From NCBI RefSeq assembly GCF_046119375.1, contig NW_027362773.1, positions 93,310,001 through 93,374,000 on the forward strand: DNA of 64,000 bases, in the 5' to 3' direction. The notes beneath the pieces were generated by a model. That model searched no databases and was not told where the DNA came from. It was given only the letters and a program-made list of their open reading frames with translations. Each line of letters begins with the position of its first letter. The first letter of the stretch is position 1. Of this stretch, positions 42,916 to 56,145 are shown in pieces. This DNA is from Phyllobates terribilis. Taxonomy: Eukaryota. The position numbers and the translations under genes are program-made.

Positions 42916-45900
42916 TCACAACTCTTTGGCCTTCAAAGCCAAAAGTTTGGCCTCTGTGTCATTGACGATCTGTTTTATCTTCTGAAGGCAGTCGAGGTAT
43001 ATGTCAATCGCCTGCGGGTTTTCAGGGTCGACATCTTCTGGCTGAGGCAGAGCCAATAGTTTATCTGTAGAGATTACAGCAGAATCTAAGAAAATAGGGA
43101 GAAAAAAAGAAAGAGGATTACTATACCTATAATAAAATGCAAAGAGAGGTCTACAAGACCATCTGGAGCCCCTTTATAACTTAAGTAGTCCCCCTTGTAA
43201 AATAAAAATAACAGATGCTGTCCTCCCGCACCGGCGCCTTCCAGCTATATAAGCGCCGGGTCTCAAGTGACACTGTTATGCCATGTTACAGTGGCCATTT
43301 TGGGCTGATGCGCTCTAACTTCTTCCGCTCGTCTGACATTCATCCGAGATAAGTACGAGCACTGCAGCCCGATTGCGGCCGCTGACTGTTCTGCCATGCG
43401 AGTCCTGCCGCCAACGTAACAAGCCCCGGCATCGTTGGAACGGTGCTACTTCGGGAGGCGAGTATCTGTTATTTTTATTTTACAAGGGGAACTATTTAAT
43501 TTAAAAAATGAGTTCTCCAAGTAGTGGGCGATCCCTTTAAGATTAGGTTGATATGATGTATATTTGATGCAGATTTTAATATGAAGCCTGCAGTGTTTCT
43601 GCATTTACAAAATGGGCATATTTTTCACACTTCTTAATCAATTTTTATTTGCATGTTTTTTGGGGTTGCAGAAATGGACCAAAAAAAAAAAAACCCAAAT
43701 AGGATACCAAGCTAGTGGTTTAATCTGCGGATTTAAAGTCCCATTGAAACGAATAGAAAAAATTCTGCACTAAAAAGGTGCGTATAAAGAGATTATTGAA
43801 AAAAAAAAAATTCTGTACCAAATGAATATTGCAGCATGTGGATGAGAAAAATCTGGAACCCATCCTCTTTGCTTGTATAAATAAAATGCTGCAAATTTTA
43901 TGAAGAGAAAATCCACCAAATATGTGTGGGATAGTTTTGAAGCTATGAATAGGAATAATGCCCAGCTTCACCCCTTCCAGATACCGCTCCTGTACATGCC
44001 CGGGAGCGATTGTTCATCAAGGTGGACGGATTGGGCACCACTGCATGTTCTCTCCATATGGACACATCAGTGGCCATAAAGAATGTAAACTAGGGGTGAA
44101 CACAAACTACTGGGTTTTTAATTTCTCTGAAACATTAAAAAACAGAAAATTCAAGGAAAATTACACATTTTCTATTATTTGTCTGTGGTTATGTCCCTCA
44201 ATCAGACAAGGCAAAAGCCATTTACAGAGGTCCAGATTCTGTATGGACGTATGCCCGACTCTTGAAATGTTAGTTTCTGGGTATTACAGTGAATACATAT
44301 ATAAAAGAAACAAATCAGATAATAATCAGATGATATTTTCTCAGCCATTAATACTTGTATATAAATCTTTCACTTCTGCACTTGCACAGGCGTCATCTTG
44401 AGCCACGGTTGGAGGAGCTGCAGAAGATAAAATAATATCTATTATCAGCCACATGAATATTATAAAGAAAAGTTTACATCTTGCAAATTTTTTGTTCTGT
44501 CACTCATGGGTGAATGCCCGGTCCAGATCTTGCACCGGGGCCCATCAAACTCTAGTTACACCACTGACTGCAGGTAACAGTAAAGCCCTTTAATAGAGCG
44601 ATCTAGAAAAACTATTACACTGCAAAGCTCAAGACTAGTTTTCTTTAGAAACTGTATGCTTTAATGTTTTTACACTTCTTTCCCCATCAAGGTACCGAAT
44701 GGCATCTAGAAGAGTCGTACCTTCCGTCCCATTAGTTATAACCTGGACCTGGCTGTGTATTATAGTTGGGCGCCAACCGCTAATGGCCTGAAGTGACCGC
44801 CCCCATGCCGCTATATGGGGCAGCCTTATCCACATGGGAAGCAGAGGCCGAAATGAGAATCCGAGCACAGTCTTGACTTTGGCTGTTACTTATTACCTAG
44901 CAAAGGCTGACAAAACTCACTTTTTGGAAGTTCGGCTACCAGGCTCAAGAATAAAGCGGATTCAGGAGATCGAGAGAAAACTGGTGGCTCCTCTCCAAAT
45001 ACGACAATAAGGATCTGAATTAACCCCAAAAGGTCTGACGGAGGCTGTGGAGAGGGAATACAGCAATGACTACCCTGCACTGGACGCTGTACTCACCGGT
45101 GCCCTGCGGGTCCGGCACATTCTCACTGAGTCACGTTCTGTGCTGCTCTTCACAACCAGAGGATTTCGGTCCTAAATGACAGCTCTGAACTATTTTGCGT
45201 ATATGGTGGTTTCAAAAGGTCTTAATATTTTATCTGGAAAGCTAGCACAACAATCTAACACTTTTTCATCTTTCTTAATTGCACCAAGATTAAAGTACAC
45301 AAAAATGTAAAAAAATACATATACATATATATATATACATATATATATATATATATACACACATACATATATATATATATATATATATATTCTCATTTAA
45401 AGATTTTTCTGTATTTTCATGACTATGAAAATTGTACATTCACACTGAAGGCATCAAAACTATGAATTAACACATGTGGAATTATATACTTAACAAAAAA
45501 GTGTGAAACAACTGAAAATATGTCTTATATTCTAGGTTCTTCAAAGTAGCCACCTTTTGCTTTGATGACTGCTTTGCACACTCTTGGCATTCTCTTGATG
45601 AGCTTCAACAGGTAGTCACCGGAAATGGTTTTCACTTCACAGGTGTGCCCTGTCAGGTTTAATAAGTGGGATTTCTTGCCTTATAAATGGGGTTGGGGCC
45701 ATCAGTTGTGTTGTGCAGAAGTCTGGTGGATACACAGCTGATAGTCCTACTGAATAGACTGTTAGAATTTGTATTATGGCAAGAAAAAAAGCAGCTAAGT
45801 AAAGAAAAACGAGTGGCCATCATTACTTTAAGAAATGAAGGTCAGTCAGTCCGAAAAATTGGGCAAACTTTGAAACTGTCCCCAAGTGCAGTAGCAAAAA

Positions 45901-48900
45901 CCATCAAGCGCTACAAAGAAACTGGCTCACATGAGGACCGCCCCTGGAAAGGAAGACCAAGAGTCACCTCTGCTTCTGAGGATAAGTTTATCTGAGTCAC
46001 CAGCCTCAGAAATCGCAGGTTAACAGCAGCTCAGATTAGAGACCAGGTCAATGACATACAGAGTTCTAGCAGCAGACACATCTCTACAACAACTGTTAAG
46101 AGGAGACTTTGTGCAGCAGGCCTTCATGGTAAAATAGCTGCTAGGAAACCACTGCTAAGGACAGGCAACAAGCAGAAGAGACTTTTTTTGGGCTAAAGAA
46201 CACAAGGAATGGACATTAGACCAATGGAAATCTGTGCTTTGGTCTGATGAGTCCAAATTTGAGATCTTTGGTTCCAACCACCGTGTCTTTGTGCGACGCA
46301 GAAAAGGTGAACGGATGGACTCTACATGCCTGGTTCCCACCGTGAAGCATGGAGGAGGAGGTGTGATGGTGTGGGGGTGCTTTGCTGGTGTCACTGTTGG
46401 GGATTTATTCAAAATTGAAGGCATACTGAACCAGCATGTCTACCACAGCATCTTGCAGCAGCATGCTATTCCATCCGGTTTGCGTTTAGTTGGACCATCA
46501 TTTATTTTTCAACAGGACAATGACCCAAAACACACCTCCAGGCTGTGTAAGGGCTATTTGACCAAGAAGGAGAGTGATGGGGTGCTACGCCAGATGACCT
46601 GGCCTCCACAGTCACCAGACTTGAACCCAATCGAGATGGTTTGGGGTGAGCTGGACCGCAGAGTGAAAGCAAAAGGGCCAACAAGTGCTAAGCATCTCTG
46701 GGAACTCCTTCAAGATTGTTGCTGCTAGAACTCTGTGTGTCATTGACCTGGTCTCTAATCTGAGCTGCTGTTAACCTGCGATTTCTGAGGCTGGTGACTC
46801 CGATAAACTTATCCTCAGAAGCAGAGGTGACTCTTGGTCGTCCTTTCCAGGGGCGGTCCTCATGTGAGCCAGTTTCTTTGTAGCGCTTGATGGTTTTTGC
46901 TACTGCACTTGGGGACAGTTTCAAAGTTTGCCCAATTTTTTGGACTGACTGACCTTCATTTCTTAAAGTAATGATGGCCACTCGTTTTTCTTTACTTAGC
47001 TGCTTTTTTCTTGCCATAATACAAATTCTAACAGTCTATTCAGTAGGACTATCAGCTGTGTATCCACAAGACTTCTGCACAACACAACTGATGATCCCAA
47101 CCCCATTTATAAGGCAAGAAATCCCACTTCTTAAACCTGACAGGGCTCACCTGTGAAGTGAAAACCATTTCCGGTGACTACCGCTTGAAGCTCATCAAGA
47201 GAATGCCAAGAGTGTGCAAAGCAGTCATCAAAGCAAAAGGTGGCTACTTTGAAGAACCTAGAATATAAGACATATTTTCAGTTGTTTCACACTCTTTTGT
47301 TAAGTATATAATTCCACATGTGTTAATTCATAGTTTTGATGCCTTTGGTGTGACTGTACAATTTTCATAGTCATGAAAATACAGAAAAATCTTTAAAATG
47401 AGAAGGTGTGTCCAAACTTTTGGTCTGTACTGTATATATGCATGTATCTCAAAAGAATGCAGCAGCACTCCATATGGCCAAGATGTTTTCCTCAGCAACA
47501 AGTACTTACAAAAAACGAAGGTTTTTAGCGCATAAATTGGCCAATTCATGTGCGCCCATCAACCACGGCAAGGTAACCTCCCCCAGATGGGTAACTACTC
47601 TGCCTTCCATGCCACTTTTGGGCTACAAGCCTACAACTAAACAGACAAACATGTCTTCTTCTGGGCTAAAACACCTACATTTAAAGGGCAAGCAGAACTG
47701 TTTGTACATCACCTGCTGGTTAATGGGAGGAGGCCATATGGAGTGCTGCTGCATTCTTTTGATATATTTTATAGTTACAGCAGCTGGCACCAGTTCAATG
47801 TGATGGTCAGGTTTCTCTGGTTTGTTTGTATATGTATGTATAATATACATATATTTTTTTGTTTTCTTTTTGGAAATGGAAACTGACGACAAAATAAAAC
47901 TAATAGCAACCAACAAAGAAATCGCTGGAGACATGCCTTATTAATATTGAGTAATATTCAAACAAAAAGAAAAGGCAATAAAAATATCAAAAATATATCC
48001 ATTTATTATAGACATCTTAAATTTAAATGAATACAAGACAAGGCGTCTTAAAAAAAAGGTTATGGAAGAACACCAGAAGGGGATAAGGTAAGTATAGAGA
48101 CTAAAAATTAAGTAATATTAATCCCAAATCAAGCAAAAGAAGTAGACCACAATTATCATGTATCATGGGCAATTTATATAAAGGCAATTAAATGAATATA
48201 AGATGAAAGTGCACAGAGGCAGATTGGGCAGAAATTTTAAATAAATATGTATATAACCAGCAGTATATAAGTAAAGATGATGAGTCTAATGCAAGTGCAA
48301 TGGCTAATAAATATTTTAGATCAGCCCATATAATATACATCCACTTAGGTCCAGAACTATTTGGACAGTGACACAAGTTTTGGCATTTTTGCTGTTTACC
48401 AAAACATATTCACGATCCAGTTCTATAATCAATATGGGCTTAAAGTGCCGACTCTCCGCTTTAATTTGAGGGTACTGACATCCTAATTGGAGGAAGGGTC
48501 TGGGAATTACAGCTCTTTAATATGTAGATGCCTCTTTTTCAAGAGACCAAAAGTAATAGGACAATTATCTCTAATGCTCTTTAATGGGCTTTTCCCTCGT
48601 TAATCCATCAATGAAGCAGGTAAAAGGTCTGGAGCTGATTCCAGGTGTGGCATTTGCATTTGGAAGCTGTTGCTGTGAACCTACAACATACGGTCAAAGT
48701 AGCACTCAATGGAAGATAAACAGACAATCATTAGGCTGAAAAAAAGAAGAAGAAATCCATCAAAGAGGTAGCAGATATGTTAGGAGTGGCCAAATCAACA
48801 GTTTGATACATTCTGCAAAAAAAAAAAGAGCACACAGGTGAGCTTGGGAACTCAAAAAGGCTTGGACTTCCACGGAAGACAACAGCGGTGGATGATCGCA

Positions 48901-55988: not shown

Positions 55989-56145
55989 ACTGAAGGAAAG
56001 TCCCGTCAGAATGAGCCAATAGGAAACACAGCAGTCACAACTTCCGCTCCGCGCTTACGTCACTTCCGTATACACAATAACTCGTTCCCATGGTTACCGA
56101 AGACCACGCTGCGTCCGCCATGTTGGATACGGGCAGGTTTCCCTC
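55989..56145 (-). promoter_or_regulatory. Duplicated tsg101-type promoter of the paralog
   Basis: ACTTCCGCTCC..GCGCTTACGTCACTTCC, GTTCCCATGGTTAC and CCGCCATGTTGGATA are colinear with 38254-38345; CCAAT at ~56017. Confidence 0.7.

Follow-up and report, generated by a model that had tools for sequence, protein, structure and literature searches.

TSG101 is the entry point into the ESCRT pathway for many enveloped viruses and host cargoes. Within the same pathway, the retroCHMP3 genes of some mammals are intronless retrocopies of the ESCRT-III gene CHMP3. Antiviral activity has been demonstrated for these duplicated, truncated copies (10.1101/2020.08.30.273656). Overexpression of TSG-5', a laboratory construct of TSG101 (residues 10-240), was reported to block PTAP late-domain function (PMC10807055). 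An older duplication of the UEV exons of TSG101 in vertebrates, with fusion of the copy to an LDH gene, gave rise to UEVLD (UEV3) (PMC2926785); the UEV of UEVLD is 56% identical to that of TSG101 (PMC12513931), and UEVLD contains the Ldh_1_N and Ldh_1_C domains. In TSG101 itself, the M95A mutation is reported to abolish PTAP binding and N45A to abolish ubiquitin binding (PMC2172688).

The window, which is the whole stretch of 64,000 nucleotides of Phyllobates terribilis DNA that was analysed, contains three adjacent minus-strand genes: the 3' end of UEVLD, a TSG101-like gene, and the full TSG101. The sequence-only reading of this DNA had placed a second TSG101-type gene at 42916-56145, and such a gene is present on the minus strand from 42916 to about 56145. 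The features of the locus are as follows.

60912-61082, minus strand: UEVLD, the neighbouring gene upstream, its last coding exon with the stop (tblastn with UEV and LDH proteins)
56040-56144, minus strand: core promoter block of the TSG101-like gene, originating from that of TSG101 (78.5% identical to 38243-38349)
55947-55988, minus strand: exon 1 of the TSG101-like gene (ATG at 55988; codons 1-14; donor gtgagg)
53484-53568, minus strand: exon 2 (85 nt; canonical ag/gt sites)
53088-53153, minus strand: exon 3 (66 nt; ubiquitin-binding β-hairpin, residues 43-64)
50027-50190, minus strand: exon 4 (164 nt; residues 65-119, UEV core; Pfam UEV E 3e-24)
50027-50134, minus strand: tract recently converted by TSG101 (codons 84-119; all 108 nt identical to TSG101)
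44921-45044, minus strand: exon 5 (124 nt; last part of the UEV followed by 15 diverged residues; retains the phase-1 donor)
44355-44417, minus strand: exon 6 (63 nt, new; acidic linker; in-frame if skipped; the sole solution giving the exact protein)
42916-43085, minus strand: exon 7 (new; end of the linker and conserved C-terminal helix; stop TGA at 42918-42916)
42289-42294, minus strand: candidate polyadenylation signal AATAAA, 622 nt past the stop (pattern match only)
38243-38349, minus strand: core promoter block of TSG101, the source of the paralogue's promoter
23051-38130, minus strand: parent TSG101 (391 aa in RefSeq; exons 1-5 at 38130-30066, later exons at about 29111-23051)

The TSG101-like gene has seven exons, of which 1-5 are derived from TSG101, as is the core promoter, and 6-7 are new. 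This model gives a product of 237 amino acids that matches RefSeq XP_073515559.1 exactly; all of its splice sites are canonical, and the last exon contains the stop. The RefSeq name, "tumor susceptibility gene 101 protein-like", comes from automatic annotation. The span of the gene and the spacing of its neighbours are the same as in the RefSeq annotation. The region of the last UEVLD exon shares 83% identity with Engystomops UEVLD at its 3' end, and its spacing also agrees with RefSeq. That the copy is UEVLD itself was ruled out: the last exon of UEVLD lies farther upstream, and the product has no LDH domain. The sole run of N in the window is at 13587-13746, outside the TSG101-like gene. A perfect 1.2-kb repeat is present elsewhere in the window. 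No mention of the TSG101-like gene was found in the literature searched. We infer its expression solely from the RefSeq models and several Ranitomeya isoforms.

Exons 1-5 of the two genes are 42/85/66/164/124 nt (TSG101-like) and 42/85/66/164/121 nt (TSG101) long, with equal phases and GT-AG sites throughout, as the sequence-only reading had noted of the splice sites. That reading had also described promoter, introns and exons as homologous. This holds for the exons and the core promoter; in the introns, only about 50-100 bp flanking each exon aligns. The promoter block at 56040-56144 aligns to both Engystomops promoters with common invariant strings, and the CpG observed/expected ratio at 56000-56249 is 1.14. 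The coding sequences differ at 38 of 444 positions. Within residues 1-145, 13 amino-acid differences from the neighbouring TSG101 were counted, where 10 had been claimed, and the UEV domains are 91% identical in protein. In a tblastn search with full-length TSG101 proteins, the proline-rich, coiled-coil and C-terminal exons were absent at 38.3-45 kb, as had been proposed; the parent gene, at 23-29 kb, was the only place with matches, those to the Vps23 core exons lying at 23-25 kb. The TSG101-like gene is a genuine copy of the first half of TSG101, intact and specific to frogs.

The UEV domain of the product is complete, as expected from the earlier reading (Pfam PF05743, E 1.4e-46, profile positions 4-121 of 121). 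No other Pfam domain was found in the product, neither PF09454 (Vps23 core / steadiness box) nor an Ldh domain. The residue numbering of this UEV is that of human TSG101, with which it shares approximately 80% identity; exon 4 alone aligns to residues 66-119 of the human UEV with E 1.4e-33. The AlphaFold model superposes on the crystal structures of the human TSG101 UEV with a TM score of 0.89 and an rmsd of 2.0 Å at 80% identity. Its overall confidence is low (pLDDT 61) and that of the UEV only moderate, mostly 70-85 but 49-60 at residues 81-120. The model shows the E2-variant fold with the N-terminal helix and the β-hairpin extension of TSG101.

All 12 PTAP-contact residues in the list taken from PMC7650771 (Asp34, Thr58, Tyr63, residue 64, Tyr68, Asn69, Ile70, Thr92, Met95, Val141, Phe142, and Ser143) are the same as in the frog's own TSG101, and so are Val43, Asn45, and Asp46 of the ubiquitin hairpin. 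Trp75 and Phe88 are likewise retained, so that every binding residue reported as kept is indeed kept. Judging from residue identity, the P(T/S)AP groove should be capable of binding, and so should the ubiquitin hairpin. Residues 62, 82, and 83 are Arg, His, and Thr, as had been described; Arg62, however, cannot be called new, because it is also present in rat TSG101.

When the gene is compared with TSG101, located 4.8 kb downstream, the core of the promoter, the structure and phases of exons 1-5, the UEV, the binding residues and the predicted fold are shared. In contrast, the new gene lacks the proline-rich region, the coiled-coil stalk, the internal PTAP motif and the Vps23 core / steadiness box, and has two unrelated 3' exons instead. 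None of the elements known to assemble TSG101 into ESCRT-I is present in its product, including the Vps23 core / steadiness box, which builds the ESCRT-I headpiece. UEVLD arose similarly, when a tandem duplication of part of TSG101 brought a copy of its 5' exons together with other exons, and it lies in the same neighbourhood, immediately upstream. The statement that TSG101 is usually single-copy in vertebrates needs qualification, since it overlooked this older UEV duplicate next door (PMC2926785). The TSG101-like gene differs from UEVLD in lacking an LDH domain, in its closer resemblance to TSG101 (about 91% identity) and in its much younger age, and sequence exchange between it and TSG101 still goes on. 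The locus shows three successive outcomes of one duplication mechanism: TSG101, UEVLD, and the TSG101-like gene. TSG-5' is also an N-terminal piece of TSG101 with the UEV and without the C-terminal assembly region, but it includes the proline-rich region, whereas the TSG101-like gene is natural and has its own linker and helix. Like retroCHMP3, the new gene is confined to one lineage, duplicates an ESCRT gene without its C-terminal part and leaves the parent intact; unlike retroCHMP3, it derives from ESCRT-I, is a DNA-level tandem duplicate with six introns at the parental positions and phases, and has gained new exons.

The sequence-only reading had taken the gene to be UEV-only. This is incorrect: two further coding exons (44417-44355 and 43085-42916) encode an acidic linker of about 55 residues, for which disorder is predicted, followed by a helix of about 32 residues. 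The structure model places the helix at residues 205-236 (pLDDT 74-80). Over the last 38 codons, Phyllobates and Engystomops share 71% identity at the protein level and 80% at the DNA level, with an omega of 0.21 (P = 0.0009) at a dS of 0.78; the helix is under purifying selection. Between Phyllobates and Ranitomeya, the last 30 residues are 97% identical and the UEV domain 83%. The helix is the best-conserved paralogue-specific part of the product. Relatives of the helix and linker beyond the frog orthologues were not found by blastp/tblastn, by a word-indexed search with the tail, or among PDB sequences (E ≤ 10) and Pfam (E ≤ 10), and the helix showed no similarity to any TSG101 in blastp/tblastn. 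Its amphipathicity was not above that of shuffled controls (P = 0.13).

Orthologues with the same helix were found in the same UEVLD-TSG101 interval of Ranitomeya, Anomaloglossus, and Engystomops, four species besides Phyllobates terribilis. The gene is kept in at least five frog species and in two superfamily-level lineages of Hyloidea. No gene is annotated in this interval in Pseudophryne or Pelobates; the TSG101-like gene is specific to a group of hyloid frogs. Exons 6-7 are open in all five species, and the splice sites are intact in both species whose locus DNA was read, Phyllobates and Engystomops. For Ranitomeya, the annotation includes isoforms that skip exon 3 or exon 6; isoform X2 of Ranitomeya variabilis lacks exon 6. 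The PTAP groove is unchanged in four of the five species, the Engystomops orthologue having T92A, and the Ranitomeya orthologues have N45S in the ubiquitin site. Residue 20 is changed to Ser in Ranitomeya and Gln in Engystomops, Tyr82 to His in Dendrobatidae, and positions 23, 41, and 83 vary repeatedly among the orthologues. Independent duplication in each lineage, suggested by the grouping of the UEV exons by species, was ruled out by the common helix exon, position and orientation.

In the codon analyses, which took in Phyllobates and Engystomops, the UEV omega was 0.24 for the TSG101-like gene and 0.034 for TSG101, an approximately sevenfold faster evolution. TSG101 barely varies between frogs (98% identity across two families). 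The paralogue branches carry 35 non-synonymous and 19 synonymous changes, against 3 and 12 on the TSG101 branches (P = 0.003), and the paralogue-branch omega of about 0.5 is below 1 (P = 0.03, two branches together). It should be mentioned that purifying selection on the UEV exons can be mimicked by gene conversion from a constrained donor. Parts of these exons have been repeatedly overwritten by TSG101 via gene conversion: 11 informative sites support it against 3, and the longest identical coding run between the two genes is 120 nt, compared with 32 nt between TSG101 orthologues. In the tract at 50027-50134, both Phyllobates copies differ from Engystomops TSG101 at six sites. The locus clearly exemplifies gene conversion that is limited to exons and takes place between a parent gene and its truncated daughter.

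We give about an even chance (roughly 0.5) to the reading that this is a frog-specific UEV-linker-helix gene, born by partial duplication of TSG101, which acts as a competitor or modulator for ligands of the TSG101 UEV. The promoter and exons 1-5 of TSG101 were copied into the short spacer between UEVLD and TSG101 and fused to two new 3' exons. The product consists of a TSG101-type UEV (residues 1-145), the acidic linker and the helix, without Vps23 core, stalk and proline-rich region, and between conversion events its UEV surface alters fast. Since the groove and the ubiquitin hairpin are unchanged, the same ligands as for TSG101 would be expected, namely ubiquitinated cargo and PSAP/PTAP-bearing host proteins, HRS among them. 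Entry into ESCRT-I by the known route should be impossible for this product, so that it might serve as a soluble competitor or modulator of ligand binding to the TSG101 UEV. The helix might provide self-association or a partner of its own. Because of N45S in Ranitomeya and T92A in Engystomops, ligand binding may not be a conserved function. The gene represents a natural experiment on the TSG101 UEV uncoupled from ESCRT-I.

A new function unrelated to ESCRT, in which a free UEV regulates ubiquitin ligases or signalling and the helix serves as its tether to a new partner, seems unlikely. The TSG101 UEV alone is reported to protect a Nedd4-type ligase, with a predicted interface of Lys14, Tyr17, Leu20, Tyr82, Ile86, and Trp117 (PMC11725782), and the paralogues alter two of these residues, 20 and 82. 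These changes could equally signal loss of the interface, and the PTAP groove kept in four species suggests its continued use. The conservation of the helix would fit such a function, for which UEVLD is a precedent as a UEV duplicate in a non-ESCRT context (PMC2926785, PMC12513931). The helix is left unexplained if the gene is a dedicated antiviral decoy soaking up viral P(T/S)AP late domains before ESCRT-I, because a plain decoy needs none. A decoy or restriction role is plausible, by analogy with TSG-5' overexpression (PMC10807055) and retroCHMP3 (10.1101/2020.08.30.273656) only, and the intact groove and the absent ESCRT-I core would suit it. The raised non-synonymous share and the repeated changes at positions 23, 41, and 83 might then reflect an arms race. 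Against this, omega on the paralogue branches stays below 1, the variable positions are outside the listed PTAP contacts, with 20 and 82 in the proposed E3-ligase surface (PMC11725782), and the promoter resembles the TSG101 housekeeping promoter rather than an inducible one. We regard the dedicated decoy as quite improbable. A similarly small chance is left for a natural ESCRT-I decoy in poison and túngara frogs, a free UEV catching viral P(T/S)AP late domains, in which recurrent conversion would keep the mimic matched to TSG101 and the helix would tether or oligomerise it; if true, the gene would be the ESCRT-I counterpart of retroCHMP3.

The evident conversion tracts, the elevated paralogue-branch omega and the exon-skipping isoforms of Ranitomeya could also be those of a decaying relic without its own function, whose frame is intact only through conversion repair by TSG101. 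This reading is disfavoured and very improbable: exons 6-7 have no donor and yet remain open in every species, the helix is constrained (omega 0.21 at dS 0.78), the splice sites are intact in two species, and the gene has been kept in two hyloid lineages. A mis-assembly affecting exons 6-10 had been named as a danger. In a very large genome rich in repeats (PMC12208295), errors of this kind are conceivable, as the 1.2-kb repeat shows, but the chance that a collapsed or mis-joined TSG101 region, with exons 6-10 missing from the assembly only, explains the gene is negligible. There is no gap within the gene, the copy has its own exons 6-7 and its 38 coding differences from TSG101, and the artefact is refuted by cross-species synteny: the same architecture and position recur in the independent assemblies of four other species.

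In the self-comparison of the window, six short collinear blocks pair the region of 30.1-38.3 kb with that of 45.0-56.1 kb. These blocks are open on the minus strand, and their peptides are TSG101-like. The former region belongs to a complete TSG101 gene, as judged from the presence of exons 1-5 together with the proline-rich, coiled-coil, and C-terminal exons; the latter belongs to the TSG101-like gene, which is untouched by the single gap of the window (13587-13746).

TSG101 and the exons of the TSG101-like gene
38130 to ~23051, minus strand: TSG101, exons 1-5 and those for the proline-rich, coiled-coil, and C-terminal parts
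55988-55947, minus strand: TSG101-like exon 1, length and phase as in TSG101
53568-53484, minus strand: TSG101-like exon 2, length and phase as in TSG101
53153-53088, minus strand: TSG101-like exon 3, length and phase as in TSG101
50190-50027, minus strand: TSG101-like exon 4, length and phase as in TSG101, Pfam UEV match
45044-44921, minus strand: TSG101-like exon 5, as TSG101 exon 5 but with three additional bases
44417-44355, minus strand: TSG101-like exon 6, needed for exact XP_073515559.1
43085-42916, minus strand: TSG101-like exon 7, stop included, needed for exact XP_073515559.1

The splice sites of exons 1-5 of the TSG101-like gene are GT-AG throughout, and thus intact, as the sequence-only reading had described. 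Exon 4 of the TSG101-like gene aligns with residues 66-119 of the human TSG101 UEV domain; therefore, its numbering is the same as the human numbering. When exon 4 was used as a query against 1.84 billion representative proteins, a 218-aa protein, P0032 (RefSeq "TSG101 protein-like" from Engystomops pustulosus), was obtained, and positions 43032-42919 of the window match its last 38 residues. Further queries, first P0032 and subsequently P0152, led to P0152 itself (XP_073515559.1; "TSG101 protein-like", Phyllobates terribilis, 237 aa). Exons 1-5 together with exons 6 and 7 reproduce this protein exactly. In addition, RefSeq gives the same extent for the coding region (13,073 bp) and places the neighbours equally far away; these are a 502-aa UEV+LDH gene on the upstream side and, on the downstream side, the 391-aa TSG101. 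This means that the product of the gene is XP_073515559.1. The product is thus not confined to the UEV domain, as had been supposed when exons 6 and 7 were missed; position 42916, from which the feature had been drawn, is where the stop codon in exon 7 ends. The annotation is automatic and the gene is otherwise undescribed, with no mention of it found in the literature searched.

UEV is the sole recognised domain in the protein (E 1.4e-46), and the ESCRT-I assembly region is missing. An AlphaFold model, built with 29 aligned sequences and of modest confidence (pLDDT 61), shows the UEV fold, then residues 143-201 with low confidence, and a helix at residues 205-236 (pLDDT 74-80), which is coded by the last exon and is absent from TSG101. 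The modelled UEV part superposes on crystal structures of the human TSG101 UEV domain with a TM value of 0.89 and an rmsd of 2.0 Å. The linker is acidic (nine D/E versus three K/R). The hydrophobic residues of the helix follow a heptad-like pattern, but its amphipathic moment was not higher than in shuffled controls. Sequence and domain searches detected no relatives of the helix and linker beyond the frog orthologues.

Twelve residues have been listed as contacts of the PTAP peptide (PMC7650771), and all of them are the same in the TSG101-like protein and the frog's own TSG101. The same is true of V43, N45, and D46 in the ubiquitin hairpin, so that the retention claimed for both sites was borne out. 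M95A is reported to abolish PTAP binding, and N45A to abolish ubiquitin binding (PMC2172688). Within residues 1-145, the protein differs from the neighbouring TSG101 at 13 positions, rather than the 10 counted before, and all of them fall in residues 4-83. R62, which had been considered new, is also present in rat TSG101.

The same helix occurs in annotated proteins of four other frogs.

Annotated proteins with the same helix
Ranitomeya imitator: five isoforms
R. variabilis: three isoforms
Anomaloglossus baeobatrachus: annotated
Engystomops pustulosus: annotated

The arrangement of Phyllobates, with the gene flanked by UEVLD and TSG101 and all three on one strand, recurs in Engystomops, Anomaloglossus, and R. 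imitator. Three families of Hyloidea are represented among the species having the gene: Dendrobatidae, Aromobatidae, and Leptodactylidae. No gene is annotated between the UEVLD end and TSG101 in Pseudophryne corroboree (4.4 kb) or in the gap of 2.9 kb in Pelobates fuscus, and on the L chromosome copy of Xenopus laevis the upstream neighbour of TSG101 is a different gene. Among the length-filtered matches listed, no same-helix protein was found from toads, tree frogs, ranids, or Xenopus, which does not prove its absence. It should be mentioned that alternative TSG101 products which retain the UEV domain but not the Vps23 core are annotated in Xenopus laevis and Pseudophryne corroboree (326 and 411 aa; P0007, P0264). 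Alternative splicing may also yield UEV-only products where the extra gene is absent.

Homology between the two genes had been proposed for the promoter, introns, and exons 1-5. It holds for the exons with approximately 50-100 bp on each side and for a promoter block of approximately 105 bp; the remaining intron sequence gave no alignment. This block is common to both genes in the two species with readable DNA, Phyllobates and Engystomops. In the Engystomops gene, the lengths of exons 1-5 are the same, the small exon 6 is different, and the last exon is homologous (80% DNA identity). The UEV exons group by species, not by gene. Eleven informative sites join each paralogue to its own TSG101, against three that follow orthology and one in a third arrangement, and the eleven cluster in exons 4-5. 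Conversion is evident in codons 84-119, where the two Phyllobates genes are identical across 108 nt, with six sites at which Engystomops TSG101 departs from both. The two share an identical coding run of 120 nt, compared with 32 nt between the TSG101 orthologues, and their dS (0.17) is half of that between the TSG101 genes of the two species (0.35). The Engystomops copies form a mosaic different from that of Phyllobates. The simplest reading is one duplication before these families split, followed by independent, exon-limited conversion from TSG101.

By an approximate method with small counts, omega was 0.034 for the TSG101 UEV domain and 0.24 for the paralogue UEV domain, figures that are confounded by gene conversion. 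The helix has no conversion donor and is therefore the cleaner witness: its omega is 0.21 at dS 0.78, significantly less than 1 (P = 0.0009), and not near 1, the outcome held to speak against the sequence-only reading. This purifying selection indicates that the gene is kept for its protein. With crude polarisation, non-synonymous and synonymous changes number 14 and 8 for the paralogue of Phyllobates, 21 and 11 for that of Engystomops, and 3 and 12 on both TSG101 branches together (paralogue versus TSG101, P = 0.003). Between Phyllobates and Engystomops, identity in residues 15-145 is 98% for TSG101 and 83% for the paralogues; between Phyllobates and Ranitomeya, it is 97% for the last 30 residues of the helix and 83% for the UEV domain. 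Positions 23, 41, and 83 vary repeatedly among orthologues, and N45S and T92A occur in Ranitomeya and Engystomops, respectively.

The TSG101-like protein may bind the same P(T/S)AP and ubiquitin ligands as TSG101 while remaining outside ESCRT-I, and would then be a soluble competitor or modulator, with the helix possibly supplying self-association or a partner. The antiviral decoy proposed earlier would be a special case of such a competitor, suggested by analogy with overexpressed TSG-5' (PMC10807055) and with retroCHMP3 (10.1101/2020.08.30.273656). The conserved helix, the TSG101-like promoter, and the location of the variable positions off the PTAP groove argue against a pure decoy. A ubiquitin-ligase-related role is a live rival to the soluble competitor; Y82 is part of a proposed E3-ligase-facing surface, outside the PTAP groove (PMC11725782). 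A relic kept intact by gene conversion alone is unlikely because of the helix. Mis-assembly, which had been considered as an objection, is excluded by the assemblies of four other species.

The gene falls within the TSG101-type UEV family, and its protein is not an ESCRT-I subunit as defined. It is distinct from UEVLD, a separate gene, and, unlike retroCHMP3, it is not a retrocopy. An earlier event of the same kind at this site gave rise to UEVLD (PMC2926785, PMC12513931); thus, the locus holds three stages of one process. Other vertebrate gene models also fuse the TSG101 UEV domain to unrelated C-termini (P0011, P0033, P0036, P0010, P0002). The tail is coiled-coil-like by eye in P0033 (Albula goreensis), GTPase-like by eye alone in P0036, and unrelated in P0010 (Sceloporus undulatus), and P0002 has two UEV stretches within one model. 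It may be that the 5' exons of TSG101 are reused more often than is assumed; alternatively, these models may be annotation fusions.

An L-lactate dehydrogenase-type gene (15152-19222, plus strand), one exon of which matches Ldh_1_N (E 1.7e-20), lies on the strand opposite to TSG101; LDH is beside TSG101 in like position and orientation in Pelobates and Xenopus laevis. A 40-bp tandem repeat (35786-37953; approximately 54 copies, 75% G+C, strong G/A skew) takes up over half of intron 1 of TSG101. Intron 4 of the TSG101-like gene contains a 2.0-kb foldback element (45396-47397) with a centre of 645 bp and inverted arms of approximately 680 bp in total, 97-99% complementary, adjoined by a long (AT)n tract (45315-45390). 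Upstream of the last UEVLD exon, a G-rich tandem repeat with a 34-bp unit and over 60 copies (61993-64000) passes the window end and presumably lies in a UEVLD intron. In a G+C-rich stretch, two direct repeats of 1202 bp each (3211-4412 and 6970-8171) are 100% identical and 3759 bp apart, representing a tandem duplication of very recent date or else a duplication made by the assembly. Between them is an intronless 700-aa ORF (4393-6495, plus strand) with a C-terminal match to the cold-shock domain PF00313 (E 1.2e-8). Two copies of a dispersed repeat of approximately 270 bp, 92% identical and oppositely oriented, lie at 1822-2095 and 61491-61764. A further copy, at 78%, is carried by an intron of the TSG101-like gene of Engystomops (19006-19276 of the locus DNA, L001), and the repeat family is therefore common to two frog families.
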